From Neoechinorhynchus agilis (Eukaryota > Animalia > Acanthocephala): a stretch of 64,000 nt of DNA. Numbering within the stretch: position 1 is the stretch's first letter; every line of letters begins with the position of its first letter. Made by a program: the position numbers and the translations under genes. The notes beneath the pieces are model-generated. The model was not told the DNA's origin. It made no database searches and was given only the letters and a program-made list of their open reading frames with translations. Positions 9,256-59,244 of this stretch are shown here, piece after piece. The stretch spans positions 6,798,784-6,862,783 of the forward strand of contig CM121341.1 of assembly GCA_051530055.1 (NCBI GenBank), written 5' to 3'.

Positions 9256-11099
9256 ATGGATCACAAACCAGGAAAAAAGCGATTTCTTGATTCAGTTTCT
9301 AAGGATCTTCGTGAGAATCGAGTAAAACCTCCAGAAAAGAAGCGCCGTCACACAGTTGGTCCCATTCGCCGGGCCAAAAATGTACACCACTCATATACTC
9401 GACTGGACGACTTCACTTCGAGTTCCAAAGAATTTCTTTGCTCGAACGCTGGCGTTTTGTTCACTGCTGTCATTAGCCCACGGCCATCGGCGACGAGACT
9501 TAAACGAAAAGCGAATTTCGCCGATAACAAAGGGTGTTATTTTGACGAATGCGATTTTGATGATTGTAAGACTGTAAAGACGTTCTTTGACAAATACTGC
9601 GATTCACCTTGCGTGTGGCGTACAGTGGATGAACTTAACGAGTTGGTGGAAAAATTAGATTTGGAACCTGTAGTGGAGAAAAATGGGACTGATCCAAGTG
9701 CACTAAAACCCAATGCTTCAACTGTGTCCAATGAATTTGATAAATTAGAGAAGCTTCTTCAAAACTTCGCGGATAGCGCTTCTCTTTGTGATCAAAAGGA
9801 AAACTTACCAGAAACTGAAATCGAATTACAGACGAATGACGAGTCGCTCAGTGCGCTAACGGATAATAGGAAACGGACTAGTATTGATCAAATGATCATC
9901 AATGATGTCGAAATAGAGAAAAAGGTACGAATAAAAGATTTGGACAGTGCGGAGAATGAACGATTAGAGTCCAAGTCGAGGTATTCCGTTGATACGGACG
10001 CCATAAGGAAGAAGTACGAACTTAAAGCACCCAGTATCTCGGCGCCAAAATATGGAGACAAACTCATAGAACTGTTACAAACGAATTCAAAGAGTTCAAT
10101 TCACGATGAGCTTGATAATGAAAAGTTTAAACATCTGAGATTCATGCAAGTTTACGTGGTAGATGTTAAGGTTGGGTTTTCATAGATTACTTTGAGAGAG
10201 CACAACATGAATCTCAGTAATCAGATTTTAAAAGAACTTGAAATAATTATGGTAAAGTTGAATGGTATTAAGCTCATAGATATACCGAATGACTCCTTTC
10301 AAATCTGTAAGCGGGAACTTCCATTTTACGAACAAACGATCGAGAGCATCAAAATACGCGAGCGAGCGTCGTTAATGGCCAAAAAATTATTTTCACCTTG
10401 GAAATTGACATCGATTGGTTCTTTAGGAAAATTTACAATTTCCTCAGACAATTCTATTGCTTCACTGAACATTGAAACACGTAACAAAGTGGGAACGGAC
10501 TACTTGGATACAAACTTCGAGATTCTGTCTTGCTCAATCGAATTTAACTTAAATGAATTTGATACGTACACTAAGAACGCGTTCAATACTTTCATAGATA
10601 AATCAGGAATTTATGATGTTTTATCCGAACCTCAAGTTAGCGTGAAAGATGTTCAACGTGTTATATTAGAAGTTGACAACGCTTTTCGAAATACCAAGAT
10701 GTTCGTTTCATCGGTCTACGAAAGTTGCAATAAGACAAAATTTGTAAGAATTCTAGAAGATGAACACTGGATCGATATTCTTTTTCGAATAGATAATTAC
10801 TCGTTTGTTTCGGTTCAGTTTGCACTGTCTTCAAGGAAAGATAAAGTGTTTGATTCGGGCATCGTCAAGATCATCGATCTTACTTTAAGGTGAATTCCTT
10901 TGTCGTTTGCGCCTTCTTGTTGTTAAATGCACACCATTCACTATTTAGGTACAATTGGGTTAATGGACTAAAAAAGAAATTAATCGATCTGATCGATGAA
11001 GAAATAAACCGAATTGACGAGTTAGTTTCTATTGATCAAATTGTTTTGCGTGTTGGATCGATCTTGAAGGCCAACGTTAGTGGTACTGGTGATCTTTAA
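9256..11099 (+). CDS. ~590-aa, 3-exon protein with a coiled coil and a C-terminal region resembling the KNL1/Spc105 tandem RWD domain (tentative)
   Basis: ORFs 9256-10185, 10192-10893 and 10890-11099 join through short GT-AG introns. PWKLTSIG..FTISSDNSIASLNI, VQRVILEVDNAFRNTKMF and IDILF..FVSVQFALS loosely parallel the KNL1 C-terminus. The CDS is well supported; the family call is weak. Confidence 0.55.
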
Positions 11100-13320: not shown

Positions 13321-16300
13321 ATGTATGACAACCGTCAAGATTTACAACAGTTGGATAACAATCTACAAACCTCAATGATTGGATCACAAGTCTCTTGCCG
13401 AAAATTCAACAGGAAGAAGTTTATCTCAGATGCTCTAAGAGAGCCATATAATTTAGAGATCGTGAAGTATCTGTCTCAGGTAATTTCTTAAAATCGTAAG
13501 TGTATCCATCACGTTATTGCTGTTGTAATTTATTCTTTCCACTATTCTTTGGACTCGATTTTAAGCCAATACATTGGTATTGTACTATATTAAATAGAAA
13601 CTTACTTGTTGCTATAAAGAGATTATTTAAACTATATCAAAAATTTGACTATTTCGTTCATTTTGGTCTTCGTCACCACCCCAAGAATTAAACATTAATT
13701 ATTGAATTAAATATTTCGGAACCTGTGTTGTCTGTTCAGTAAATTATTTTTTGAAGAGGGAACCCGGGTTGCGAAATATTTAATTCAATAATTAATGATT
13801 AATTCTCGGGGTGGTGACAGCTCACAGAAAACCAAAATTAGATTCCTCCGAATGTAATTCTCAAAGATATTTCGTTTATGATCGCCTAATATGAGTCTTG
13901 TCTTTTATGGGTTCTTTATACACTTGATTGTTGCCAATTTTCAGACACGATTTAGTTTTTTCTTGTGACCTCTCAATAAGTTCAATTCCTCATTAAACTT
14001 CTCTTTCAAAGATGGATGAGATCATTGGAGATGTGGACTGTCATGAACTGCGTCTGCTGAGATTACGTTTGCTAAAAAAAATTAGATTTCTGGAAAATAG
14101 CGAAAATCAAGGAATTTGTGCATACAGTCATGTAAGTATTTGTTGCTTGGAATTTTGCTCTCCCAATATTAATAAATTTCAAGGCAATCAAGCAGTTAGA
14201 GATGAAAAACTGGATTGTTAAAAGGCGAGAGGATTGGAATAATCTTTTTCGCAAGTTTAGGGAAATCCCACTACTTCGTAAAATCGAATCTCAGAAAGCG
14301 GAAGTGACCTGTGTGGATGACATTATCGATAACGTAAATGAAGCAATGCAGGAAATGTCAATTTATGTTAGAACTGCAAAGGAAATATATAAAAACAATT
14401 GCCAAGTGTGAGCATTTATCTGCTTTCTGCCTTGATCGCTGGATCGGCACTGGAATACACCTAAAAATAAACTGTCGCCATCTCTTAGATTTAAACATTT
14501 CAAGTATAGACCACCAGCAGGAACGGAATTTATTGTCGAGCATGAATGTTTGATTCCAGTTCCATCTTATAATCCAAGTTGGCAATCCTTGTTACATATA
14601 AAGATTGTACCTAAGCCTCGCGATGACACGATTGAAAAATATCTTGTAAGTTCATTTTATGGCAGGGAAATTTATTCCTGCTGAAATCCTTAGACCCAAA
14701 GAATGGGCAATTCAGAATTGTTTAAATCAATTTGTGATTCAATGACTGTTCTGTATGACTTTAAAGACCGAATATGGACATTGGCCCAATCAAAGAATCC
14801 GTTTAAAGTTAAGATCTTTTTGTCTATCTCGCTCCTATTAACTTACAACGAAAATAGATGCACAAAAAATCTACCAAGAGTACTTTAGAAAGATCTGTAC
14901 ATCGATTGAAACTCTTAAAGCTAAACCACCATAAAGGGTATACTATTTTGCTACATGATGGGCTTAAAAATTAATTCTAAAATGATCGTTCTTGAGCCAA
15001 GATACCACTTCGAGTCCATTTGAAGAATTTAGGCCTTTAATCCCTGCATTGTTCAACCGAGGGTTATATTTAAATTCGCATAAAACTAATATTTTGGGAT
15101 GTACAAAAGATAAACGCGACTTCATCCGTAGGATAAAAACATAGATTACAATTGATGATTTCGCAATTTAAAATTATAGTGCGTGCAATCGAATTTCAAA
15201 GTCAAATTAATGTTCTAAAGATTTTTTTTCGAGTAACCCAAAAAATGGAAGCGAAAACTATGAATTGGTAGAAATGCAATATGTAGAAATTAAGTTTTTA
15301 AGCTGTATTCAATAGATTAATTTACTTATTAATCTACTTTTCATGTTAGCTTTTCTACGAGATTAAAAAATTTAAACGGCCTTGCTTATATTAACAGGTT
15401 CAATGTTTGTTTTGATTTCAAGAACTATCACAAGCGTAAGAAATCCAATGTTCGTCAAGTTACACCTGCCCGTTATGTCATACGAGGAGATTGGTTCGCT
15501 AAGCAATTGTCTACGGATATTTTCAAAGAAAGTCCATTACCACCTACTCCCGAGCCTTTAAAAAAAGTCAAGGACATGACTATAGATGAACAGACATCAA
15601 TTAAGGAAGATATTATTCATCACTTGCACGATTGCTCATTTGCTAATCTGATGGGAATTTTCGAAGGATTGCATAATTCGATTCCTATCAACTCCCAATT
15701 GCTCGATTTTGACTTATATCAGCCTGAATTCAGTATACTTTTGGAAAATTTGTTCGCTTACAACGAAGAGATTTTTGAGATCTCTAATATCATCTGGCAA
15801 ACAAACAAACAAATGGCTTCAGAAATCAGGTAGTTGATTTCAAACATTTTTCTTGCTAGTAAAACGGGTTTCACCATCACGGCACAATCAAAATCCATCT
15901 TCCTGCAGCATTTCCCTAATTAATATGAAAGGCATTTGTCAATTAAATTCCATTCACCTATAAATTTAAGCGATACACTTTTGTGTCTCTAAACTAAAAT
16001 GATAAATTGTTTTTTCAATAAGAGATGAATTCATGTACATTAACCTATAAAATTTCAATGCAGTAACCAATCAGATTCGTCCTTATTGGTTTCTAAACTT
16101 TGCAAAGACTGAGATTACGAATTTGTTCGTTTATATGCAACGTTCGTCGAATATTACCTTAATCAATGTTTTATTCGAGATTTTTATCCAACGAAAAATG
16201 GGTGTTTTTTATTTCTTAATACTCCAATTTTTCGACGTCTTGCGTCTTCGTCAGGGAGCTTCCCTTCAGTGATCTGACGCAAGGCGTCGAAGATTTGGAG

Positions 16301-19300
16301 TATTAAGACATAAAAAATACCCATTTTTCGTTGGATAAAAATCTCGAATAAAACATGATGGTGTTGGGAAAAGAGGCTTTCCATAATGTTAATCAATGTC
16401 ACATATCACCGACTTTTGCCCTTCATATTTTGTAAATGTGAATATTAGATGCCGTGATAAGTTAATTTATGATTTTTACTAATAACCAAAATATTGTCGC
16501 ATTTTCCTCTGAACTGTCACGAACTGTATTCGAAAATTCACATTAAAATTTTAAAAATTAAAAAGTGAAAATTAAAACTTTTTCCTATGCGACAACTATT
16601 TTAATGCTTATAGAGATTTTTTCTGTCGATTTAGGCATCCTAAAAGTACTCAATGCAGTTTTTTGAGTTCCCAAAAACCTGCATATTGAGAAAATGTATC
16701 CTGGATTAAGTTGTAAGTTTTACTGTCGCGATCCATCACACTTTTAATTTAAATGCAGCAACTAAGGAAAGAATAAACACTATAAATATTATTTAGGGAA
16801 AGGCTTGTTAATTTAACAAGTCTTCAGTCCGTATATCAATGTACGATTGTAGATTCTCTAAGGATATTAGACGCAGTCATCGAGTACAAGTGGGATGATA
16901 TCGAAGAACTTTTAAAAACTGAGCTGGGACCTAGGTTTAGATTGGTGGAAATTTTTGAAGAAATCGACAGCATTTTAAGAGTAGACGATGAATCTAGCCA
17001 AGAAAGCCCTCAGGAATGTGGTGAGATTGAAAACACTGAAGAAGGAACGCCGTCGAGTACTAAATCGACTGACTATATTTTGCCTGAACGATTGCGGCGC
17101 TTATTAGAGTCACCGATCACTAACGAGAGCGAAAAGGTTGCATCACAGCCATTCAAATCCGATCTCGGAAATTCACAAGTTTTTGGGGAGATCGAGGAAT
17201 TACTATCGCAGCATTTGAAGTTCATTACGAATAAATCTAAGATCCCTGATGAAATTGAGGAGATTGAAGAGCAGCAATTAGAAACTAATTTGATACCATC
17301 ACGAATGTCTGAAGAATATGGTGATTCTCGGTCAAAAGAACCCGAATACACGCAAAGCAGTTCTCAAATTCCTGACGAAAACGAGGGCATTGAAACACAA
17401 GAAATGGAGACAAATCCGAGACATTCACAAACTTCTAAGAGACGCGAGGATATTCAACAGCAAGAGTTGGATCCTAACGAAAGTATTCCACCAGAATTAG
17501 TTTCAAATGAGAGTGTCCACACAGAGGAACTGGAGAATGACGTGCGAAGTTCAATTAATGCTCATGGAAAGGAAATTATCTATGTACCGCGTATAAAATC
17601 CAATCGGCTCAGTGCACCAATTCCCAGCGGTAACGTTAGTATCGATGCAGATGAATTGCGGAATAAATTGAGAAACTCAAATATATCTGGCGGTATAAAA
17701 AGCTCACGAATTTTGTCCGAAATCGGTAGTATTCATGCACAACAAGTTGATACAAATGTGAGAAACTCCAGAGTTTCTGCAGAGATTGACAATGCTCGAG
17801 TACACTGGTTAGAGACTCAACAGAGAAGATCAAGCATTCTCGATGACTTAATGGGCTTACGAATGTCCGACAATCCTGACAATGTGACAACATCGCCAGT
17901 TTTGGACGAGAACGAGACAATTGAAGTACAGCAAATGAAAAAAAATCTAAATAACTCACAAATTTCTTCAGATATCAAGGATATTCAAGTAGAACCATTA
18001 GCTACTCAACAGAGAAGTTTAAGGATTTCAGACCTTTCGAGAAGTCCACAGATTCCAGAAAAGAATTTAACTATTCAAGGCCAACACTTAAGGTTTCAGC
18101 AGCGCTCAGAATATTCAAATGGCAATGCCCGCACTCAAATAAAACCAATGGATCCAAATGTAAAAAACTCACAGGTTTCCAAAGAATGCAAGAATAGTCC
18201 AACAAAGGAAGTAAATAATATTCAGAGGAAATCAACAATTTCTGACCTTTCGAAGAGTTCACAGATTTCAAAAAAGAACTTAACTGTTCACAATCAACAC
18301 TTAAAGTCCAAAGAGAGAAGTTCAAAATATTCTAATAACAATGCCCGCACTCAAATAAAACCAATGGATCCAAATGTAAAAAAATCACAAGTTTCCAATG
18401 AAGTTAAGAATGGTCCAACAAAGGAATCGGATAATATTCGGAGGAAATCAACAATTTCTGACATTTCGAGAAGATTGCAGATTCCTGAAAAGAAAACAGG
18501 TGCCCAAGGCCAACACTTAAAGTCCAAGGAGAGAAGTTCAAAATATTCTAATGATGGAGCCCGTATTCAAAAACAGCAGATCGAGACAAATTTAAGAGCC
18601 TCACCTAATTATAAACTAACACACCAATTAAGTAGCAGCCCAAAAAAGTCAATGATCAATAGCGACAGCAATGAAACTCAAGCACATCTATTGCATTCTA
18701 ATCTGAGAAGTTCAGGCGTATCTGTAAAGGGTGATAGCACTGAAGTACGACAACTGGGCATTAGCCCAAGAAACTCACGGATTTCCGAAAATAATACGGG
18801 TATTCGAGACCGGCGTTCCAATTTCGGGCAAGAAAACTCACGGCTGTTCGATTGTAATATGACTACTCAAGATCGACGAGTAAAGTCCATATCCAAATAT
18901 TCACGTATTTCTGACAATGGCGAAGAGGCACGAGCTGCTGCTAGTGAGTTAATATCCGTTGGACTATATGGTCACTTACCATTATCAGACATAACGTCTA
19001 ATAAAAGTGAAAACATCTCCAATGTGTTAGAAACGTGCGGTTGCATTCAGTTTAAGGAAGCACAGGATAATCCTAGCAACCAACTGAGCTCTACAATAAG
19101 CGACCGAATTTCATCTCAACAAGACGAGATTCTTCGAATCTTTCCAGATTATTTAATGCACGAAAGCTCACCGCGATTCGCATCTCAACAATTGGAACCA
19201 GCGCGGGTTTCTGAGAAGGATGAGATGGTACAACCTCTTCAATCGGATTCAATGGTAGAAAGCTCACCGAATGCTGAGAGTGAATTTAGTGGTCAAGACC

Positions 19301-21872
19301 ATCGATTAGATTCTAATGCAACATCTTCCCAGATTTTTGACAACTGCGATTGCATCCTACCCCGAGAGTCGTACGCTGTTCTGAGAACCACGAGCAGCGA
19401 CAAATCGGAATCAGTCCGACATTCGAAAAAGGATGAGATTATTTCAGGACTCAAAGCAAAGTCGATCCAAAAAAGCTCATGGTCTACTGAGCAGAATATG
19501 AGCATTCAAGATCAACAATCGACTCCTACTTGGAGGAATAACGTTTTGTCTCAATATAGTGAACAAGCGCTTCCATCTGAGTCTTTGCAATTAAGCTCAC
19601 AGCTTTCTATTGCCGACGGGAACATTGAAGACCAGGAAATTAAGTCGACTTTGACAAGTTCACGGATGTCTGAGAACCATGGTTTTGTTCGGACGCTTCA
19701 ATCGGACTCAATGCAAGACGCAGCGTTATCTGAGCGTTTAAAGTATACTTTGGGAAGTTCACTTATGCTTGATGATAGTAATGATGGTCTATTGTATCGT
19801 GTGGATTGTCTTCAGAAACGTTCAAGTTTTTCCCCTGAGATCGACTATACTCAGTCCGATGAAATGATATCAGATGTAAATTCTTTTCCGATTTATGATA
19901 GCTACAGTGAAGAATCTGAGAACAATTTAATATCGTTACAAACATCATGGGAATCCTTGGGCGATTGGCAACCGAATTTCCAACCTGACAAGCAAGAATA
20001 TAAGATTTTAGGGTTGGTGAGGCGCATTCGATTGCAACAGCTTAAATTTAATCAAAGTACTTCTGAATGTTTGGAAGAGATCGATGATGTTGAATCGGAA
20101 CCATTTAGCCTCAATACATTTACTCGCGAGGACGAACTACCACAGTCTTTAGAGTCTATGAACAAATGCGATTACTTATCCCCTCAGATTTCCGCAGAAG
20201 TTGTATCTGTTCTCGAAAAACAAACTGAATCAAGTTCGCAATATTCACTTATTTCGGAACCGAACGACAGTATTTCTTTACAACAGTTGGAATCTCGACA
20301 GCAAGTTGAGACTTGTTCAAGAAGTTCATCGATTTCTGAAGATAACGATGAAAGTGAAATGCAATTGTCGAGTTTAGGCATGGTGTCTTCAGAGATTTCC
20401 GATGACAGTAGCAGTTCTACACCGCAACTGCAGGTTTGGTTTGATAAGAGCAAGGCGATTGTGAAGGAGAGTTGTGATGATCAATCGAATTCTCAACAAA
20501 TGACTTTGGACCATAAACGCTTTGTGTACAAAAAGAAAACAGCACGAATTTTAAATGATGTGGAGAAGGCCCGGAAACAGCTGATACAGGTTAAAATGCA
20601 CGAAGTCGGAATTTTCCATGCACTTAAGTTTATTGAAGAATTAGAGCATGAAGCAAAAACTAATCGTAATTCGGACGAAATCAGGGAAACTGAATGTTTA
20701 GATTCAAGTTCCTATTTAACTGCTTCTGATAATTTTGACGACGTTGAAAGTACTCAATCGTTCCAATCAGAGCTTAATCAGATGGATTCACTGTTTATTG
20801 AGGAGGTCGAAAGTACTGTTAGGCAGCAGTCAACTTTAGGTCTGATAAATTCGGAAGTTGTAGAAGAGAATGAAAGTGTTCAAAGTCAGCATCTAGACGT
20901 CTCAAATACATCAATTATCGAGGAAACCAAAAGAGTTTACCCGCACTACATGCCTCGTTGCTCGGAAATTGTGCCAATCTGCAACGATGCTACAAATGAT
21001 GGATTGCAAACGTTAAAGTGCATCTCTACGAATTCACCAAATGTTAAGACGGTCGATGGCGTTCAAATTTCCGATGTAAACAGTAGCCCAATACCTTCAG
21101 CAGTTGAGGACAACAATGAAAATGATCGAGCGTTCCTTGAGATAGCTTCGCTTATTTTTAAAGAGTTGGAGCCTAATCTGAGATCCTCACGGAATGCTAG
21201 ACCAAGTCTTCATATTTGTCAGAGTGATGAGTCAATTGATAGTGAAGAAGAGGACGAAGTGGACGAAAGTCATTTTGAGATTGACATTGATAAAATTAAA
21301 GAAGTGTGCCCAAAACCGAAACCAATATTAGATCTCACAATACCAAGATGGGCAAAAATATTAGAAGGCCGTGCCAAAGATGTTATTGCTTTTTTGGATG
21401 TTTCTAGTTACTCAACTACGGACGATGTAATTTCTCAGGTTCTTTTTTTTGCGGTTTAAATATTAATAAATCTACAATTCTATAGGTAATCGATAGTATG
21501 GCTAAGATCGTCATGAAAAAAATTACATCCGATCGCGAATATGTGTGCAAATTGAGCACAATTGGATGGGATGAGGAAGATGAGCAAGAGAAAGCAAACA
21601 GCGTTTTAGAATTTAAACATTTTCCAAATGGTTTCAATAGTATTGGAAAAGATAGAGACACTCAGGGATTAATGGACGCAATCATGTATCACCCAACGAA
21701 GATTTCTTGTTCTGCCATTGATGCTATTGGTTTATCTGAGAAGAGACTCAAAGCCTCTATTCGACGTTCGCTGGGTGAAGACATTTCGGTAGTTATGAAA
21801 AATTTAAATAACATAATTGAATACCGTAACACGACGGATTTTAAACTATTTGAAGAAGTTCTTAATTCGTAA
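13321..21872 (+). CDS. Large (~2000-aa) unknown protein with one very long Ser/Gln/Glu-rich exon containing internal repeats
   Basis: Phase-compatible GT-AG exons at ~13321-13479, 14012-14120, 14171-14410, ~14480-14650, ~14695-14805, ~14860-14940, ~15398-15829, ~16797-21437 (contains the 1505-aa ORF) and 21487-21872. Joining into a single gene is inferred. Confidence 0.65.
16166..16356. mobile_element. Near-perfect foldback/MITE hairpin (~85-bp arms), intronic
   Basis: atgttttattcgagatttttatccaacgaaaaatggg... and ...cccatttttcgttggataaaaatctcgaataaaacat. Confidence 0.85.
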
Positions 21873-29044: not shown

Positions 29045-32000
29045 TTAGTTAAAGAGGGCCAAAGAACCACTTATAGATTTGTATATTTGGTACAGTCGTG
29101 CCTGCCAAACGAGTGCTTGTTGCCGCAAGTGTGAAAACAGTCTTTGGTAAAAGTGGCTGGCTTCATGTTGTCTATAATACTGTTCCCGAGTGAGAACACA
29201 AGCTTGATGTAATTGCAAAAGTGCTGCGAATCTTGCACCTAGTTGAAATTCAATGGATTCAAGGAGGCGATTTGTCTTTAAGAGAAGAAGCATTTGTTCG
29301 GGAATGCTGTTAATTACTCCGGCAATGTCGCTAAAGTAATCCGGGATTCGATCTCGCAATGCAGCAACCTAATGAACAATTGAAATAAGTTCTCAACTTT
29401 CAGTTCAATACCTCGGATAATGTAGGTCGCTGGGTCGATAAGCCTTTCTGAACCGAATCCCATGTCCGTCCGCTCACAATTACAGCCAACATCTTATGAA
29501 GCCCAACTGGAACTTCAAAGTATTCGGACAAACGCATCAGCTCCGTTTCATCTCCAGCCAGTAAACCTAACCAGAATCGACTGTAGTTGTACCGAAAGAG
29601 GTCATCCAGTTTCTAAACAAAAAATTGGTGCGGAACATGTCAAAGCGTTAAATTCAAATTGTTTTAGAATCCCGACATGGAAAAACACACAAAGAAAATG
29701 TGAAGTCCTGTCGAAATTGGACCGGCCTAAATTCATTAAAGATACACACGCTCGAGATGATACGAAAATGATGATTAAAGGCATCAAAGATGCAAGTTTA
29801 TGAATTCGTGATAAAATTCTGAGTGCATCGATTTCTTCTCCCATAAATTATGGACCTCGAAGATTCTCACTAACACGAGAAACTTCTCGGATGGGTTTTA
29901 GGAATTTTGATGGTTATTTAAGAGATGTCGATACACTAAAAGAGTAACCAAAGCCTCGACTATTGTGAAAGAATATACGCAGAAAGTGTTCCTTAAAAAT
30001 TATCAGATGAGAAAATGAGTACAAAATGTAGATAAAATGGATGCGAATTCAGACATGCAGTAAATCATTGATTTCGAGAAAAGATCACATTGACTGATTA
30101 AGCAGCACTTAATCTCGTCCAAACACAGAGGTTAGTCAGGTTGCCCGAGAAACTCTGGAATGTATATGTCAAACGAATGATTAATCATTGGAGGAGATTA
30201 TCCATTGGGCGACGACTGTAAATAATCGAGTTTTGGACGAAAAAGTGAGTAATTTTGATGTTGGGAAAAAACTATATGCGAAAATCACGGATCAATTGTG
30301 CGTTCGGTGCGGACATCTTTGTTTCCTTTTAAAGATTGTCTTAATCGCAAGCGGCTATAAAACCATCTTAGCGACAAAAATACCAACCTGATAGAGAGCA
30401 TGATCGAGTAGAATGACCTTAACGACTCCATTTTCTCGGCATACTTGGAGATTTCCAGGATGTGGATCACAATGCACGAATCCGTGTTTAAAGATCAAAT
30501 CACTAAAGATCTTCCCCATTTTCCAAGCAACCTTAGGTTTTCGTAATGAAAAAGACAGAACGTCTAGCAGCTGGCAAACCTCTTTTGGGTTAATCTTTCC
30601 AAGCCTGATTAAGTCAACATCAGTTATCTTGTATCCATCGACGAACTCCATCACCAAAACGCGGTCTGAGCTTATGATAACAACGGAACCCTTAGCGAAC
30701 CCCTGGCACCGCCGCTAATATATGTCCTTGTATACGCGAGGAATCTTCACAAAATTCAAGTCCGATAACATTTCCGATACTTTCTCACCATGTTCAGCTT
30801 CCGATATGAAATCAAGTTCCATCGGGATCTTCAGACGAGCTTGTTGAGCCACTCGAGCCAGTGGGAATTCCGGAAATATGCGTTTTACTGTTTTAGTAAA
30901 CAGTCTAAGCATCTCAAGATCAGCCATTCCCCTCTTCTTGACATTAGGATGTTGTATCTTTACTGCAACGGAGGTCCCGTCATGTAGACGGGCTCTGTGG
31001 ACTTGCGCCAATGAGGCCGCTGCTATTGGCTCCTTATCAAACCACTCGAATATATCGTCTGCCTATTTGCATTTAGAGAGAGTGGAATAACAGTTTGAAA
31101 GTATATTTAGGTCACCTTATGGCCGAGATCTTCTTCAAGTACAGATAAAAGTTCTTTGAGTGAAGACTTGGGTGCGGAGTCTTGCATTACACGTAAGGTT
31201 TGTATGTATTCCGGTGGAACGAGGTGGTATAAAGATGAAAGCACTTGACCGAACTTTATAAAGAGACCTCGATTTCGCAGGCATAAGTTCAGAATTCGAT
31301 CGGCGCCGCGTTGGTGTAACTAAATGATCACTCGTTGAAAGAGAGATGATTACGTTCAAATTCAAAGACGATTATAAACATTGAGTTTGTTAGTTGTGAC
31401 TGAGAAAAAATTTTCAAGGTATTTCAAGGTAATTGCGAAAATTTTATCAATATTCTAAAGAGTACGTCTAAAATCTTTTGGACCGTAACACTTGCGAAAT
31501 ATGTGAGCATTAATACCCTTCAGGCGAGTGATATAAAGACAATTTCGCAATGCTTAAATGTATTTATTTTCGGTACAAAACGGACGTTTAAATCAATTCT
31601 GAATCACTTGTAGTAGCAATATTAAAAAGTTTCAATTTTTAAAAGCATTTTGTGCATAAACTGTCCATTGCTTTAAGTATGAAATGAAAAATTATACTCG
31701 TACGTTGTGCGTTTTCGGTCTGAGAGATATTTAAAATAAACCAAGTTAATTTCTCCATTTTGTAATGCTTTTTTTGATCAAACCAAAGTCACGCTGACAT
31801 TATGGATTGTATCTGTTAAAGGTGCTCAGGGTGTTGCGATCTAGATTGGTATTTCATGATAAGCCGATCAAGAAGTTTTCAGCTCAATTTCATATGCACC
31901 CTTTAATTAGATAGAGAAATTTTATGAAAGCACGAGAATGAGTTTCTTTTAACAGTTTGGGAAGAAATGGATGAACAATTTTGGAGCGAAAGGGTGGGTT

Positions 32001-32732
32001 TTTTGGACAAAATTATAAGATTTGATTTTTCAGCGAACCAGGACAGCAGGTAATGATTTGAGAGGTTCCATTAAATATCAATATTTGCATGAATGGCCTA
32101 AATATGGCGTTTTATTAAAATAATTAGTAAACGTCGTCAAGAGAAAATCCTCCGGGATGATAGAGTTGGAGATTTGGTGAATCGTGCGAGAAAGCCTCGC
32201 CTATTTAGTCATTGTTTTTCAAGTTATAAAATATTTTCTATAAGGTTTAATTATGATTATCACATCTCCAACCTAAATAAAAACTATATTCTGCCAAAGT
32301 AATATTGAAAATTTTTTGCACTTAATCAAGCAGGAATGTTTAAAAATTCAATACTGATAAGAAAACCAAAACCGATGCATTAAAGCTTTTCGAATGAGTG
32401 GGATTAAAAAAGCTGATAAAAGTCCTCTCTTATCTGGCATTAAAAAACGTGCATCATAGATTACCTCTGATAGTTTTTGTTTATAAACCTCTTCGTCGAG
32501 TTGAGCGTCCAGAGTAAATTTATAGGCTATCTTGTAATCAATCACGGTGACGAATGCCTTTTATGAAGATTGATACCAAGAAAATCTTCAGCGGTCTTAC
32601 CGTGCTAAATGCGCGTCCGAAGCGAATAATGGTAAAGTTCGACAATGAGTCCGGGGAATATCTGTCCGTTGTCCATAAAGTGCCGATTCCTGCTCCAAAA
32701 AGAAACAATCCGCGTCGGCTAATAAAACGCAT
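29045..32732 (-). CDS. ADCK1: AarF-domain (UbiB) atypical kinase ADCK1, multi-exon
   Basis: LCLRNRGLFIKFGQ, PIAAASLAQVHRA...VAVKIQHP, ELDFISEA, VLVMEFVDG, GFVHCDPHPGN, LLDHALYQ, GRTWDSV, LLLLKTNRLL. One unexplained in-frame interruption at 30677-30724. Confidence 0.93.
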
Positions 32733-34692: not shown

Positions 34693-35519
34693 CTCAGAGT
34701 GAACAAAAACAACAATCATATCCGCCAGTTACTTAGGTTCTTCCGTGTTTTTTAAACTTTGAACACTACACTTGTAAACAACCTATGAAAGAAAACAACC
34801 TATTTATGTTTTTTATTTGTCGATAGGAGAAAATAAATGAAATTAAAATTTTATTGGATATTTCGGTCCACTATCTAGGATCTTCTTCAACAATTATAAA
34901 TTGATGGACAGATCTAGTCTATTAGATTAATTTACGATCGCTGAAGAAGATCCGAGATAGTGGATCGAAATATTCAATAAAATCTTAATTTCATTTTCTC
35001 CTATCAACAAATAACAATGAATTATCTTTTCAGCAAACCTATTTATGAACAGTGTTCAATCTTCTGATTCATTGTTGTCGGTGTTTTCATAAGCGACCTA
35101 AATGAAGCAAATTATCAAACAATTGATTTATTTGATAATTTTCACTCTTCGCGTAGTCTATCCAAAATGCAATCAAGAAACACTCAATTTGGTTTATCCC
35201 ATGGGATCCTCAGATTGAGTGTGTAATCCGCTTTGTTGCTCACAAATCAATTATTCGATAATTCGCTATATAAAGTGTTTTTGTAGAATATCCTTTAGTC
35301 GGCGTTTTCCCTTTTAGGCACACATCCAATCGATATTTTGGATTTTAAATGGTATATGTTAATTTTTTACTGGCAAAAGCGAACTCAGATCTATCATAGG
35401 AGCAATTTTTAGGCTGAAGGTCAATCAATCGTTAATCTCTCATAACGTTTTTTTATTGATGTGAATTATTTTAGCACTTTCGGTGGTCGAATTTTATGTT
35501 TTACATCAGAGAAGTCCTT

Positions 35520-35680
35520 AGATACCTTCTGAGGAGGCAAAACTCATCAGTGAGTTTCCTCCTCCTTTCAACGAGATATTTCGTCCCCTTTGATTATGGG
35601 TCATCGGCGGTAACGGATTCGAAACCCTTTGACCCAACAAACTGGAATCGGGAGTGTTAGTCAACTTGACCACCTCTACA
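35520..35680 (-). mobile_element. tRNA-derived SINE-like repeat; second partial copy at ~39160-39250
   Basis: Minus strand GTAGAGGTGGTCAAGTTGACTAA (A-box-like)...GGGTTTCGAATCC (B-box-like), then a body gatgacccataatcaaaggg...aactcactgatgagttttg shared with 39160-39250. No clean cloverleaf. Confidence 0.5.
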
Positions 35681-36447
35681 CAACTACGAAATGAACATTT
35701 ATGAAATGAATTGTCTTTTTTTTTCTAAAAGATTGAAAAATTTCAATAAATTAGGATTTTTTTAAGGATTCCATTAATATAGAAAAACATAATCGTGTTT
35801 GTGAGATTTTAAATCGAGAATGGAAAAGCGATTACTCAAGAAACACTCAATTTCGTTTATCCGGTGGTATCCTTCAGATTGAGTGATTAATCCGCCTTGT
35901 AAGACCGAATTTTAAAATATTCGAGTTAACGAAAAGGCCGAGTATTTTCAAGATGAATTTATTTCTGAATCAAACATCGCTAATTGAAACTGCTCAGAAT
36001 CACATCTTAGTCAATTATTTGAGAGTTTTCGCTATAAGAAAAGTCAAAATGATGAACATCTTTACAAATTCATTGCACACAAGTGAAAAATTTAGCATCC
36101 CGATATGGATTTTCTCTCGATAAATGCTTTAATTTTACGATGCGTAAAATAAGGTTTTATTATCTTTTAATGCAATGGAAAATCAAGACATAGCGATCAT
36201 TTCCATAGTTTGAATCTCAGCTTTCTGCACCAACAGAGAACAAGCCACAATTTGCGGTCATTCCAGGCAATTCATTATTCCGTGATTTTCGTTAGAATGC
36301 TAAAAAAAGCCGACGATAACTTGAATTCGAAATTTTGAGATAAAAAATTAATTTTTATCCCACAGGTTTAGCGACGCTGTCGTCAAACCGAGAAAGAACA
36401 CAAATACATTTGGAATTTGGGATTTTTACACGTGATTTTATTGACGA

Positions 36448-39400
36448 ATGTCGGAATCTTTGCCTGTGTTGAAGGATAATCGTCGGGACGATCTAATTCT
36501 AGCGTTAGTCAACAACACACTCGAATGTATGATATGTTGTTGTTGTATAAGGTTGTTAACATTTTCTCTTCTTAAAATTCTAAACTCTCAACGATAAGGT
36601 CTGAAGTGGCCGTGTTCAGCTGTCGAAGTTGCTTTAATGTGTTTCATTTGTATTGTGCTAAGAAATGGTCAAGGACTCTGAGTAGCGATAGCCACCGGAT
36701 CACCTTATGGCGATGTCCTGCTTGTCAAGTCGAATCCGACACTCATCTTCCAATTCAATATCGGTGTTTTTGTGGTAAGTTTATCAACCCCCCCCACCGT
36801 TTCAATTATGGTTCAATGACTTAAAAAATTAACGCTCAATCAATGAACTTTACGCTTTTTTTCGCAACCACACACACAAAGACCATTTGATACTGTTCGA
36901 ATCAAAGCATCTGATCTTAAACCTTGATTGCTCCAGAAATGGCATCAAATTCCTCCCGAATGAAAGTGTGAACACTTTCCCCGTGAGATTGATGGTAAGA
37001 AAGTCAAACGAAGGTTTTTGTTTCGTAGTCGTTTGCCCGGTACAGGGTTCGATTCCCCCCCACAAAGACCATTTGATAAAGCATCTGATCTTAAACTTTG
37101 ATTGCTCCAGAAATCTTTCCCCGTGAGATTGACGGTGAGAAAGTAAAACGAAGGTTTTTTGTTCCGTAGTCGTATGCCCGGTCCAGGGTTCGATTCCCCA
37201 CTCCCCCCACACACCCAATATTTCACGTCGTCTAATAATTCCGACATTTTCCCCGAGGTTTGTAAGTTTTTTGTGTGGCAAAAATACTAAAAGAAAGTTT
37301 CTTTTCCTCCACGGATAAGAACCCGAGACTTTTAGTTATTTTAAGATCGTTTCCGCCCATCGTAACCAATTTTTTAAATCAAGATTTTGTGTCTTTTGCA
37401 TCAATAACTTCTTAAGTGACAATTAAAGTTCTATTCAATTCGTTTTAATCGGCCATTATTACTGGTCTTGGTTCAATCTTGCGTTTCCCAAACCAGAATT
37501 CACATTATAGGCAAAAGAAGAGATCCTCCGGCTACTCCGAGCTACTCCACACCTCACAGTTGCGGCGATATATGCGGACGGGAACGAGTGTCAATTTCCA
37601 CTGGACAAACATGCGACCACTTATGTACGGAACTGTGCCACCCTGGACCATGTCCTCAATGTGTTTTTCTTATCAAGATCTCATGTCATTGTCTTAAGGA
37701 ATCAAGAAATCAGCAATGCGGTATAGCCTTAAAGTGGTCTTGTGGTAAGATATGTGGAAAACGTTGTCAACTAGGAGTTCATTCTTGCTCTGTTGTATGC
37801 CATTCGGATCCATGTCCGCCTTGCGAACACATATTTACGTCTACTTGTCATTCACACGGAATAAAGAGAGAAATCAAATGTAGTGATCTCGACCAATTAG
37901 CTCAGTGGTTCCCAAAAAGTTTTTTTCTTTTAATGCTATAAAACAATTTTGTTCAAGTATTTATCAACATTTTTTTGTTAGACTGAGTATATTTCAGCGG
38001 TATTTCGTCCTCTTTGACTGTGAACTATCGGTGCCAATAGATTTTGTAACCTTTTGACCTTGAAACAAAGATTCGGGCCACGAAATTCAAAAGATTTTAA
38101 ACGTGGGTAAAACGTTGGATCAAAACTGTGACCTCAATGCTCGTATCCTTCATTTTCTCCGTTTTTTACATACTTCCATTAACATAACAAGTTTGAAAAC
38201 CCGAATGCCTTGACGTTGTTCATTGAGGCTCAAATTGATTTTAATTTCTTCCCTAGCTTTGGGAACCACTGATTTAGCCCCTGATGACTCTTATTCTTGT
38301 GGTGCGATATGCGAAAAAAGGCTGGAATGTGAAGGTGGACACTCATGTATGAGACTTTGTCATTATGGAAACTGCGGCCCATGTCCGCTCTTGCCTTCAT
38401 TGGTCACTCATTGTCCGTGTGGGAAGAGTCTCATTGAGAACAAACGATCAAAGTGTACGGATCCAATCGAATCCTGCGGAAAACCTTGCATGAAAGCAGT
38501 CGAAGGTTGTGGGCATCCATGCGTCCTAAAGTGCCACACAGGTGATTGTTTGTGTATTTTTAAGCGATTCTCAGCGTTTGAAGACGCATTAGTTTTCTAC
38601 ATACGTTTTTGCGTTGCCCGGAGAAGTTTTAAAAGTTGTTTTTTACTTGTGTGTGGTGAATATGCTCTTATTTTATTTATCTTAAATCGCATACAATCAG
38701 GGCCTCACGGCATGTCTTTGGGGGCCTCTCGGCTAACTCACAGACTTCGGAGGCGCTCCATCGCACTCGAAGGGTTGTTTCTGGGGCCTATGGGCGATCC
38801 CAAACCTGACCCCACCCTTCCAGCAGCCTCGCAACCCCCATGGAACCCAGCGACCAATCGAGCGCATTTTGAATGCGCAATACTCGGCCATTGGGCCCCT
38901 AATATACTCGCCCTAATAAAAAAATCATTTTATTTTTCGCGAAATATTTCGAAAAAGGGGAAACCTATAAGGCGAGGTTTCCTCTCTTTCGAAATATTTC
39001 GCGAACAATAAAATGATTAAGTATCAATGTGTGGCCTTTTTCCACGGCTAATAATTTTCCTTTTGGTACACAGCCCACCGATCCCTTGCATCCGAGAAGT
39101 GATTGAATCACTTAGACTCTGATGCATACGGTAAAGAATTTGTACATTCCCGAGGAGACAAAACTCATCAGTGAGTTTCCTCCTCCCTTCAACGAGATAT
39201 TTCGTTCCCTTTGATTATGGGTCATCGGTGGTAACGGATTCGAACCAGTTGACTCTTAACTGGGATCAAGGGCTTAGGGCGATTCACCACATACAGACAA
39301 TTGAAAAATTTATCATCCCTGTGTGGATTTTCTCTGGTTATGATTTTTGTACACACTTCTTCGGATCCTCAGATACCTTTCCGGGGATAAGACGATGATA

Positions 39401-41019
39401 GCCACACTCCTACTTTCAGCCGACTCCTACTGAGAAGAAAAAACTCAAGACAATTGAGAATCGTTTATGTTAATCGAACGACCCAGATTGAATGTAGGTG
39501 TAAGCTAAGAGTTAAAAAAGACGTCAAATGTTCAGATCTTGAGAAACATGGAAAGGATGGAGTATATTCGTATGTTTGTAACCGGACATGCGACGCCCGA
39601 AAGCCATGTGGACGACACCGGTGCCAGGAAAAATGTTGTTTAATCAGTGAGCACATTTGTCTCCTTGAATGTGGTCGATTGTTGAAGTGCAAAAAGCATA
39701 ATTGTCAAGATTTGTGTCATGCGGGTCCATGTAAGAGTCAAAGAAAAGTTTTGGGTTGAACTTTTTTTAACTTAACTCTGGCTCATTAAGCGATGTTTGG
39801 TGGCTACATTCGACGACTGGACTTGCGAATGTGGTCAGACCGTGGTACAGGCTCCGATTGTTTGTGGTCAAGAAATGCCAATGTGCCCAAATCCATGTAC
39901 TCGGAAACACGAATGCGACCATCCGGTTCGACACAACTGCCACTCGGACCCTAAGTGTCCCAAGTGCACTTTTCTCGTCGATAAGAAGTGCAAATGCGGT
40001 CGAAATGTAAGGCGTTCTCGTGTTTAAAAATCTAAATATTCGACTTTTTCCCATTAAGGAGATGAAGAACATTCCTTGTTTTTTGCCGTCCGTGAGTTGT
40101 GGAGATGTATGCGGACGAATGTTAGCTTGTCAAGTGCATTCGTGCCACAAGACTTGTCATACGGTCAGTTTTTGTAATTGTGAAAGAAGTTCAATGTCGA
40201 AAAACTAGGGACCATGCGAAAAGGACGGAGAGAAATGCACACAAAAGTGTATTAGATTACGAATTCAGTGCGGTCATCCGTGTGGCGCACAGTGTCATGG
40301 AAATGAATCAGACTGCCCGGTCTCCGAGTGTCAAACTGAAATTCTTTTAAAATGCGAATGCGGACGATTAAAGCAGATCGCCCGATGCGGTATAAAGAAC
40401 CAAAAAACGGATAATATCGAGGTTGAGATAGACAAAATGTAAGTATTCTGAATCTATTAGAAAAACAACAACATCATTTGTTCTTTTTAGATTAGAATGC
40501 GACAAAGAGTGTAAACGACAAAAGAGATTAAAGCAAATTGCGGATGCCTTGAAAGTGGACGTTAACACTAGTGGACTTCCACCTACTGAATATCCAAGCG
40601 AACTTAAGATGCGAGCCATGGAGCTTGGTATGAAATATGTGATTGGAATAGAGGAAAAGATAGCCACACTGGTACACGAGACCATTGAACTTAAGAGTCC
40701 TAGTCGTACGCTCTATTTTGAAGCATGTGGTTGGAAAAAACGGGAGTTTGTCAAAGCCTTAGCCGAATTCTACGGGTGTTCTGGTCTCAGCCAAGGCTGG
40801 AAATCTAATCGGTTCGTAATGATTGATGCGAGATTTGGTGAATGTTATACGCCTACGAGAAGCATCACAGATGCGCTGGAAGCCGATCGACGAATCCCAA
40901 AGCCGGTGGCTATTTTGCCTGAAACCGAACCAAACCTAACAGAACACGGAATCATGGAAAGAACACAATTAGCAAACGTAACTGATGAACTTAATGACAA
41001 CGAACTGAATCAAGATTGA
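36448..41019 (+). CDS. NFX1: NF-X1-type zinc finger protein (RING/PHD, NFX1 repeats, R3H-like C-terminus)
   Basis: LECMICC..IR.EVAVFSCRSCFNVFHLYCAKKW, WRCPACQ, YRCFCGK, many CH.GPCPPC repeats, LECDKECKRQKRLKQIADAL, and an R3H-like tail (IEEKIATLV...REFVKALAEFYG). Confidence 0.95.
36875..37205. repeat. Two-unit intronic tandem repeat ending in a tRNA T-arm-like GGTTCGATTCCC
   Basis: cacaaagaccatttgat...aagcatctgatcttaaa...ttccccgtgagattga...gcccggt.cagggttcgattccc, twice. Confidence 0.75.
37903..38271. mobile_element. hAT-type MITE inserted in NFX1 coding sequence
   Basis: 14-bp perfect TIR cagtggttcccaaa / tttgggaaccactg; 8-bp flanks aattagct / atttagcc (6 of 8 match), consistent with a decayed hAT TSD. 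Confidence 0.85.
38710..38880. repeat. GC-rich dispersed repeat; inverted copy at ~58270-58490
   Basis: ggaggcgctc...gcactcgaagg...aaacctgaccccacccttccagcagcctcgcaa.ccc.tggaacccagcgacc occurs at both loci. Confidence 0.8.
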
Positions 41020-42017: not shown

Positions 42018-42445
42018 TCAATAGCCCAGTTTGACGAAATAGTCACGAAGACTACCAAGATTATTGGCAACAAGTTCTGATTTGACGGTATCATCATGAG
42101 TGGCAATCAAAATACCTAAATTGGAAAAATAGAACGAAAAAAAGGATTGAGTTTTCGAGAACACGTACATGAGTTGGCTTTAAACGCAACCAGTCCAGCG
42201 GCTCCTAGTTTTAGAACGCAGAATTCACCACAAGTCCTAACAGCGATGTATCGGCCATCGCCGACTGTGATTCCATCAGAAATCTTTTCAAAATCACTCG
42301 TTCCTTGAATCAGTAACTGAACTTGGGAACTATCCATCTTAAAGTTTGAACTCTCACACCACGGATTGCCGTCCAGACCATAGATCCCAGCTTGATTTAC
42401 GCCTTGAATCTCCTTTATTTTGTCGATGTACGCTTGCCAACTCAT
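42018..42445 (-). CDS. Profilin, 2 exons (53-nt intron 42168-42116)
   Basis: MSWQAYIDKIKEIQGVNQAGIYGLDGNPW...GITVGDGRYIAVR...CILIATHDDTVKSELVANNLGSLRDYFVKLGY*. Confidence 0.95.
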
Positions 42446-57760: not shown

Positions 57761-59244
57761 GTTCTAAGACTTTTCTGACTCTACGCTCCCGAGCTAATTT
57801 TTGTTAAAAACGAGAAGATTCTATTCAATTGTTCCTTCGAATGGATGTGTATTCCCAATGGCGAATTGTAACACACTCGAGTTTTATTATTGAAATCTTC
57901 TTTGCGAATTTTCAAGGCCTCAGCCTCCTTCGCAAGCATTTCTAGTAATTTTTTTCCAATCAAACAATGCTTGAGAAGGAGGCTGAGGCTCTTAAAATTT
58001 GCAATGAAGAGTTCAATAATAAGAGCCGAGTGTGTAACAATTCGCCATTGAGAAACAAGATGTTTGAAGATTGAATTGTTCATATCGGTTGTGTTATGGT
58101 GAAGAAATTGAAATGATTTTATTTTAAATCCGACTGTTTTCGGAGGCACAATTTTATACCCCTTTTTTATCAAGGTTTCTTGTAAGTTTATAAATATTCG
58201 AGTTGAAACCACACGAACTCAATCATTTTAATTTCTACGCCAAAAACAACCTAAACGAGGGTGTGGTGTGCGCGTTCATAATGCGCTTGATATGTCGCTG
58301 GTTCAACACCACCGGTCGCTGGGTTCCACGGGTTTGCGAGGCTGCTGGAAGGGGTGGGGTCAGGTTTTGAAATCACCCATCGGCCCCAAAAGGGGGTTGG
58401 CCCTGTTCCTTCGAGTGCGGCTGAGCGCCTCCGTTGTGTGCAAGTTAGTCGAAAAGGACTCCAAAGGAACATAACCGAAACTCCCAAAGGAAGATGTCAC
58501 AGACCAACAAGTGTATGAAGCCCTTGATAATAAATAAATAATAATAATTCATCTAAAATCGATCTTCTTATATAGCTCCTTCCTTATTTATTGCGGTAAT
58601 TTAAATTCAATGACGTCATCCTATTTTTCGTCGTTGTGTAGTGGCGACAACATTATGTAAGTTTGTTAAATCCATGTTTCGGCTCAATCCGGAGAAAAAC
58701 TTACAAGCAATCTTGATAAAGGCTCTGAATTGAGCCGAAACATCGATTTAATAAATTTACATAATATTGTCGCCACTACACAACAATCATGAGCAGTTTC
58801 ATTTTTCAATAAATCTATTTTTCGTGTTGAGAAGTAGAAATACCGGATTCTTTGTCGTTCGCAGCAATCTCAATTTTATTACTTTTTCGTTGGAAAAAGC
58901 GCATATTTCCTTTAAATTGTCGAATTAAAAAAATTCACTTTATAGTCGTTGTTGTTCTGCTTTAGGTTCCCGTGATTTTGTTTAAGAATACACGAAATTT
59001 TAAATTTATTGTGCATTTGAAAAATAAAGCGGTTTTCCTCTGGAGAAACTATGCAAATTTTTAAAAAAAAATTCTATATTGTTTTAATAACGCAAACGAT
59101 TCAGCAACCTTTTCAATTATCTCATAAGAAACCATTTAATCCGAATCACTGTCGTCAGGAAACAATTCGTCAAATTTGCCAGTGTTGGTCAGACTTTCAA
59201 ATATATTCTTAACCTAAAATGCATTTTAGAATACGATTAAAAAA

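Follow-up and report, generated by a model that had tools for sequence, protein, structure and literature searches.

A hAT-like transposable element in a coding exon of NFX1 in the acanthocephalan Neoechinorhynchus agilis: a candidate intron gain

Does a short DNA transposon that lies inside a coding exon of NFX1 in Neoechinorhynchus agilis, an acanthocephalan parasite of mullets, work as an intron, or does it break the gene? The question is raised by a stretch of 64,000 nucleotides of this genome (NCBI GenBank assembly GCA_051530055.1, contig CM121341.1, positions 6,798,784 to 6,862,783 of the forward strand), called here the window, whose own numbering is used for all positions. A sequence-only reading had noticed a 369-bp element that splits ...SDLDQLA from DLAPDDSYSC and had proposed that it became an intron through an introner-type gain. 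We are highly confident that a transposon did insert into the NFX1 exon and that it is hAT-like. That the inserted element also functions as an intron is plausible, and we regard this second question as evenly balanced; the splicing itself, and the choice of its sites, we infer.

The element occupies 37903-38271 and the reading frames end and resume as claimed: the upstream frame ends in ...KCSDLDQLA exactly at 37902, and the downstream frame reads ...DLAPDDSYSC. When the element and one copy of the flanking duplication (377 nt) are taken out and 37902 is joined to 38280, the coding sequence becomes KCSDLDQLAPDDSYSC, which is stop-free and bears out the proposed restoration of DQLAPDD. The empty site has the nucleotide sequence …GACCAATTAGCTCCTGATGAC…. 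In the closest relative of the protein, P0022 (UniParc UPI00079E60F4), the site is KCCDLVELPTSNFYQC, with 13 residues between the cysteines, and the empty site of N. agilis has the same spacing. In 40 orthologs this inter-cysteine loop has anything between 8 and 104 residues, most often 11, and the element has, given this variation, landed in a linker between zinc fingers that naturally tolerates changes in length. Moreover, there is no room for an older intron, because each terminal repeat is directly adjacent to a codon.

The terminal inverted repeats of the element are perfect over 15 of 15 nucleotides, TCAGTGGTTCCCAAA at 37902-37916 pairing with 38258-38272, so that the earlier description of a perfect, hAT-like repeat stands except for its length, which had been given as 14 bp. 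In first-order Markov simulations of the window, inverted repeats that are perfect over 15 nt number 0.18 in 64 kb. The target-site duplication, AATTAGCT on the left and ATTTAGCC on the right, was rightly called degenerate: its copies agree at 6 of 8 positions, and 0.6% of the 8-mer pairs spaced 377 nt apart in the window match at least as well (a chance of 0.006). Both mismatches fall in third codon positions. Terminal repeats and duplication together show 2 differences in 23 paired positions, and the divergence of the duplication does not differ significantly from that of the terminal repeats (Fisher's exact test, p about 0.11).

Terminal inverted repeats of hAT transposons begin 5'-YARNG and measure about 10-25 bp. 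The terminus CAGTG of the element fits this motif, and both its terminal repeat and its 8-bp duplication are of the hAT type. The first 13 nt are also the terminal repeat of hAT-N3_AC of Anolis, CAGTGGTTCCCAACCT, a member of the SPIN-like elements, in which the 8-bp duplications have the pattern NYYTARRN (PMC3014272). In metagenome contigs we found at least 120 loci in which both 14-mers, with termini identical to those of the element, lie 326-356 nt apart. Among the matches listed, these loci form one MITE family (miniature inverted-repeat transposable elements) of 355-383 bp, similar in size to the element, with a mean pairwise identity of 83% and a consensus that begins CAGTGGTTCCCAAACTGTGGTACGCG. 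In the 119 listed copies the duplication is a perfect 8 bp in 50 cases, matches at 7/8 positions in 34 and at 6/8 in 13, and lengths other than 8 bp find no support; again among the matches listed, TA occupies positions 4-5 in 80 of 84 duplications, the profile being nTnTAnRn. The hAT-type call therefore rests on data, because a family with an identical 14-bp terminus makes 8-bp duplications with a central TA. What the element shares with hAT-N3_AC and with the metagenome MITEs are the terminal 13-14 nt (CAGTGGTTCCCAA[A]) and the 8-bp duplication with central TA, but not its interior: blastn found no internal homology to the metagenome family, and nhmmer matched the terminal repeat only. Since nothing beyond the terminus is common, the comparison identifies a type of terminus and not a family. 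A Tc1/mariner reading of the CAGTG terminus was rejected, there being no TA duplication.

Stop codons are present in all six frames of the element. Its six-frame translation gave nothing at E ≤ 10 against 5.8 billion proteins, in a search that is insensitive because of these stops, and Rfam, run on the window and on 35300-39500, gave no match to the element. The 10 open reading frames (ORFs) scanned, out of 18 in the window with at least 140 aa, contained no transposase domain. The RNA fold of the whole element has a z-score of -0.58, with no unusual stability apart from the 15-bp stem of the terminal repeats, which is present in both the minimum-energy and the centroid fold. Searches of the 64-kb window with the 14-mer at up to 3 mismatches and with the whole element by low-stringency blastn turned up no second copy, the one hit being an 86-bp internal similarity to a different repeat, and this says little because the window is 0.14% of a 46-Mb genome. 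Among 68 segments bounded by inverted repeats and scanned window-wide, this is the only convincing case of an element in an ORF; an 83-bp case at 10135-10217 turned out to be an ordinary short GT-AG intron whose neighbouring exons happen to carry a 12-bp repeat by chance.

The internal segment of the element (37992-38077) is distantly related to a repeat of about 170 bp that has two copies, one upstream of NFX1 (35523-35692) and one in an NFX1 intron (39143-39309), 79.5% identical with a 93% core. On the minus strand this repeat carries a tRNA-T-arm-like GGTTCGAATCC motif; the ideas of a hammerhead and of a tRNA were dropped, as neither ARAGORN nor Rfam recognised it.

Table 1. Coordinates of the element, its host gene, local introns and candidate introns (a slash marks a splice site)
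Feature	Position	Strand	Details
Non-autonomous hAT-like element (MITE), 369 bp	37903..38271		no long ORF
Left terminal inverted repeat	37902..37916		(T)CAGTGGTTCCCAAA; 15/15 complementary to right
Right terminal inverted repeat	38258..38272		TTTGGGAACCACTG(A)
Target-site duplication, left copy	37895..37902		AATTAGCT
Target-site duplication, right copy	38272..38279		ATTTAGCC; central TTAG fits nTnTAnRn target profile
Internal segment, 86 bp	37992..38077		about 69% similar to repeat at 35523-35692, 39143-39309
NFX1-type zinc-finger gene, N. agilis	36448..41019	+	three public models: 236, 220, 331 aa
Exon upstream of insertion	37511..37902	+	ends ...KCSDLDQLA
Exon downstream of insertion	38280..38555	+	PDDSYSC...CHTGDCLC
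Intron, 47 nt	36552-36598		donor GTTGTT, acceptor ATAAG
Intron, 736 nt	36775-37510		donor GTAAGT, acceptor TATAG
Intron E, 43 nt	39748-39790		aaa/GTTTTG...TTAAG; required by ortholog alignment
Intron, 52 nt	40007-40058		donor GTAAGG, acceptor TTAAG
Intron, 45 nt	40164-40208		donor GTCAGT, acceptor ACTAG
Intron, 52 nt	40439-40490		donor GTAAGT, acceptor TTTAG
Intron, 53 nt	42116-42168	minus	donor GTACGT, acceptor TTTAG
Candidate intron (b), 338 nt	37919..38256	+	aaa/GTTTTT...CCCTAG/ct; in frame
Alternative candidate intron, 359 nt	37919..38277	+	acceptor ATTTAG/cc in right duplication; in frame
Metagenome MITE copies	L002-L121		contigs JGI24158J21664, JGI24159J19872, JGI24021J15306, JGI24022J15233, Ga0210059, MDSQ01...

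The condition of the host gene bears directly on the question. The conceptual NFX1 protein of 755 aa has 2340 relatives at E ≤ 0.001 in a search of the whole protein library, and P0022, 56% identical to it over residues 10-713 (704 residues), backs a single product of about 755-770 aa. Its relatives and its Cys/His columns place it among the NFX1 (NF-X1-type) zinc-finger proteins, a class marked by a RING/PHD-like N-terminus with repeated NF-X1 Cys/His fingers after it. It is a divergent member because its Pfam zf-NF-X1 score of 22.0 bits falls short of the 22.7 cut-off and a search of the conceptual protein for the R3H domain detected none. The N. agilis exons keep 110 of the 113 conserved Cys/His columns, defined as those present in at least 85% of 39 orthologs, and the 3 missing columns are missing in P0022 as well. 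Every exon 3' of the element is open and its conserved zinc ligands are intact. The earlier statement that the gene looks otherwise intact holds on these points. Intron D (38556 to about 39458) is without a clean canonical splice pair that keeps the conserved residues.

The public annotation was made with BRAKER, guided by RNA-seq. The exon around the insertion is 100% identical to 'hypothetical protein ACOME3_001590' of CM121341.1, a 19.4-Mb chromosome, and the intron at 36775-37510, which precedes the upstream exon, agrees with model P0001. The second NFX1 model extends into the next intron, and exon 4 (about 39459-39747) is unannotated. A full-length N. agilis NFX1 product was not found in the collections searched, nothing was found on NFX1 expression in the supplementary tables of the genome paper, and the genomic locus of P0022, sought as an intron test at the site, is not on record.

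Which parts of the element could be spliced out with the frame kept? Local introns, fixed from the annotated products P0001 and P0023 and from the profilin gene (Table 1), have acceptors that are all TAG or AAG and donors that are mostly GTAAG-like, two being weak and T-rich; all verifiable introns in the window are GT-AG. Two canonical in-frame splices had been offered by the sequence-only reading. The first, from donor ca/GTGGTT at 37905 to acceptor tttAG/ at 38277, was presented as the published introner mechanism and proves to be a frameshift of +4 nt: 373 nt are taken out instead of the 377 required, and LA^HP is followed by two stop codons, one of the four C's in gcccct having been missed. 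Its donor has a poor score and lies inside the 15-bp stem, and 37905 is also out of frame with 38256. The second, from 37919 to 38256, does keep the frame, leaving 39 nt (QWFPKTLGTTDLA) in the mRNA to give QWFPK^TLGTTDLAPDD, with 13 extra residues. The retained nucleotides (16+15+8) are open in all three phases, and because both sites belong to the element and 39 nt are retained, this splice would be frame-neutral at any insertion site. Its donor and acceptor both sit 2-3 nt inward of the stem that the terminal repeats form. The same donor joined to 38277 leaves 18 nt (QWFPKT), that is, 6 extra residues, and further in-frame pairs are 37880 or 37883 with either acceptor and 37905 or 37908 with 38227. 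The donor 8-mer AAAGTTTT at 37919 is also the inferred donor of intron E (39748).

We propose that a 369-bp non-autonomous MITE of the hAT type entered a continuous NFX1 coding exon, making an 8-bp target duplication, and that most of it may now be spliced out of the pre-mRNA as a newly gained spliceosomal intron. This route would lead from the weak donor aaa/GTTTTT at 37919 to the acceptor at 38256 or 38277, so that 39 or 18 nt of terminal repeat and duplication would stay in the message as 13 or 6 extra loop residues, and the 15-bp stem of the terminal repeats would juxtapose both splice sites. That the gene still looks fully conserved is most likely because the element is mostly spliced out. 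If the mismatches in the duplication arose after the insertion, downstream coding sequence released from constraint should by now be damaged. No damage is seen there, a slight point in favour of an insertion that is tolerated and spliced. In-frame splicing, if it occurs, is likely to be a partial exonisation, with 18 or 39 nt kept, rather than a clean removal in the manner of introners.

Several observations weigh against a working intron. When the interior of the element was shuffled, all 2000 shuffles still contained one or more in-frame GT-AG pairs free of stops (5.7 on average, against 8 in the real sequence), and in 58% of 2000 at least one in-frame pair lay wholly inside the element. Since chance supplies such pairs, their availability, to which the earlier proposal pointed, proves little. 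All candidate donors are weak and none has the GTAAG of most local introns, and the candidate acceptors are no better than random AGs under a crude weight matrix of 7 local introns, which is too small to rank acceptors and was used qualitatively. The BRAKER model ACOME3_001590 enters the element and stops after 12 codons (...DQLAQWFPKSFFLLML, then the stop), and the annotation cuts NFX1 into three 'hypothetical proteins'. Perfect terminal repeats also fit an insertion of very recent date, possibly polymorphic and as yet unpurged. Intron D has no canonical in-frame GT/GC-AG pair that keeps both CLC and NRTTQIEC, its best canonical options adding 7-11 residues or losing one cysteine. In a neighbouring ADCK-like (ABC1) gene on the minus strand, the BRAKER models 29045-30651 and 30715-32732, which are one gene in a single frame, are parted by an in-frame TAG (30717-30715) within a 48-51-nt stretch (window 30671-30721). 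Because of these irregularities of intron D and of ADCK, the assembled haplotype may carry real lesions or errors.

The insertion could instead be simply disruptive, a recent and possibly polymorphic null or hypomorphic allele, or a first step of pseudogenisation, that was assembled by chance. Translation would then meet the stop after 12 codons of the element, with a truncated protein of 236 aa or nonsense-mediated decay as the outcome, and the annotated model ACOME3_001590 behaves exactly so; this unspliced model says little, however, because the annotation is fragmentary here (NFX1 exon 4, intron D, ADCK). The 15/15 terminal repeats fit a young insertion, and the weak splice sites and the in-frame pairs expected by chance speak for this reading as well; yet the duplication has diverged at 2 of 8 positions, and if it did so after the insertion there was time for lesions to accrue in an unconstrained coding region downstream. 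The exons there are all open, and the gene as a whole retains 110 of the 113 conserved zinc ligands. The 46.2-Mb genome is a hybrid Nanopore and Illumina assembly from about 50 pooled worms plus single females: that the worms were pooled speaks for a disruptive allele, but a consensus drawn from about 50 of them leans towards common alleles, and a rare null allele is for this reason less likely to have been assembled. The irregularities nearby, in NFX1 intron D and at the in-frame TAG of ADCK, and the wide loss of regulatory genes that the genome paper describes for N. agilis also speak for disruption. Altogether we consider a disruptive insertion a serious possibility, though the balance is tilted against it.

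Three other explanations appear much less probable. An exact removal of the 377 nt by non-canonical splicing, guided by pairing of the terminal repeats and restoring DQLAPDD, would profit from the 15-bp stem that juxtaposes the ends of the element, and two other junctions in the window cannot be bridged by canonical GT-AG splicing with the conserved residues kept. None of the 9 possible registers is GT-AG, however (the options are CT..AG, GC..TA, AT..GA and similar), while the verifiable introns of the window are all GT-AG, and we know of no non-canonical splicing in Acanthocephala; we hold this removal to be very unlikely, even with the MITE-derived introns of Fritillaria and euglenids, which are documented, as precedent. 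An ancestral intron into which the transposon landed would resemble the other long introns of NFX1, which are filled with repeats, but here codons adjoin the terminal repeats and duplications at either end, which leaves no spare intron sequence, the loop of the empty site is as long as that of P0022, and no canonical site exists at the boundaries of element and duplication, which makes this history most improbable. An assembly artefact, such as a chimeric long read in the exon, is conceivable in a hybrid assembly of pooled animals and would not yield an 8-bp duplication of hAT profile exactly flanking perfect terminal repeats; we find it scarcely credible. Returning to the spliced element, a stronger form of the proposal, in which it is a recently gained acanthocephalan intron belonging to a genome-wide family that is frame-neutral by virtue of internal GT and AG sites beside the terminal-repeat stem and of the 39 nt retained, or is spliced at non-canonical borders, seems unlikely. 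If it were true, Syndermata would have an introner-like system that works by partial exonisation rather than by clean removal, and every sense-strand exon insertion of the family would be frame-neutral.

Among known systems, the closest behaviour is that of maize Ds1, which is removed through cryptic sites near the ends of the element. Ds1 is a non-autonomous hAT element of about 400 bp, whose splicing has been shown on RNA in alleles that are laboratory mutants. It is reportedly spliced from exon insertions; the key papers, cited in PMC3260210, are those on Adh1-Fm335 (Dennis et al. 1988), on wx alleles (Wessler 1991) and on 'De novo synthesis of an intron by Dissociation' (Giroux et al. 1994). 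The element in NFX1 resembles Ds1 in being a short, AT-rich insertion of the hAT type in a coding exon, with only the termini in common with family members, and in having cryptic sites in or next to its termini that could remove most of it and leave few nucleotides in the mRNA. The two differ in that splicing of Ds1 was shown on RNA in laboratory alleles, whereas that of the element is a prediction in an acanthocephalan, and in that the element has neither a known autonomous partner nor a known second copy.

The comparison with introners is less close. In an introner family, 4 or more introns of similar sequence occur in genes that are unrelated, and families are represented by the DNA-transposon introners of Micromonas and Aureococcus and by those of Gozashti et al. 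2022 and 2025. There, element and duplication each supply one of the two splice sites, the removal is clean and the splicing is verified. Like them, the element is MITE-like, has terminal repeats and a target duplication, and fills the whole gap between two coding segments. In contrast to families of at least 4 verified introns, it has one known copy, and in contrast to clean removal its in-frame options leave 18-39 nt; splicing by the introner mechanism shifts the frame, and the pair that does use element and duplication (37919/38277) leaves 18 nt. For these reasons the element should not be filed as an introner, and we treat it as a candidate single intron gain. Introner-type gain is very rare in animals and was found in only two animal groups in one survey. 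A transposon-born intron in a 46-Mb acanthocephalan genome, if verified, would be a natural example of an exon insertion that was neutralised; at present the locus stands as one well-documented exon insertion, mis-annotated as three genes.

The introns of NFX1 contain further repeats. The unusually long intron at 36775-37510 is filled in large part by direct repeats (36975-37058 and 37115-37199, 92%; 36904-36940 and 37078-37114, 97%). Intron D is a repeat mosaic over 38778-39309: its segment 39152-39253 is 93% identical to 35531-35633, a 96-bp palindrome lies at 38923-39018, and 38778-38855 matches, at 87% identity, the segment 58314-58391, whose start overlaps the 3' end of a tRNA-Met (58245-58321). 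Its flanks, GTTTGTGT (38548-38555) and GTTTATGT (39463-39470), look like a duplication with a 7/8 match, and removal of the insert with one copy leaves the frame off by one base.

In the ADCK-like gene, the stretch around the in-frame TAG ends in a typical ATAAG acceptor, and no GT or GC donor is present before the stop; it could be a short non-canonical intron (AT-AG or TT-AG), a donor mutation or an assembly error. Elsewhere in the window, an uninterrupted ORF of 1505 aa on the plus strand (16942-21459) has no Pfam match at E ≤ 0.001. Perfect inverted repeats are frequent: 22 distinct axes have arms of at least 15 nt that lie 50-1000 nt apart, and perfect 15-mer inverted matches number 223 in the real window against 0.18 per simulated window. 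Hairpin-like elements of 80-200 bp account for many of these axes (57852-58054, 16166-16356 and 13672-13818 are examples), and MITE-like sequences abound in the region although the genome is compact.

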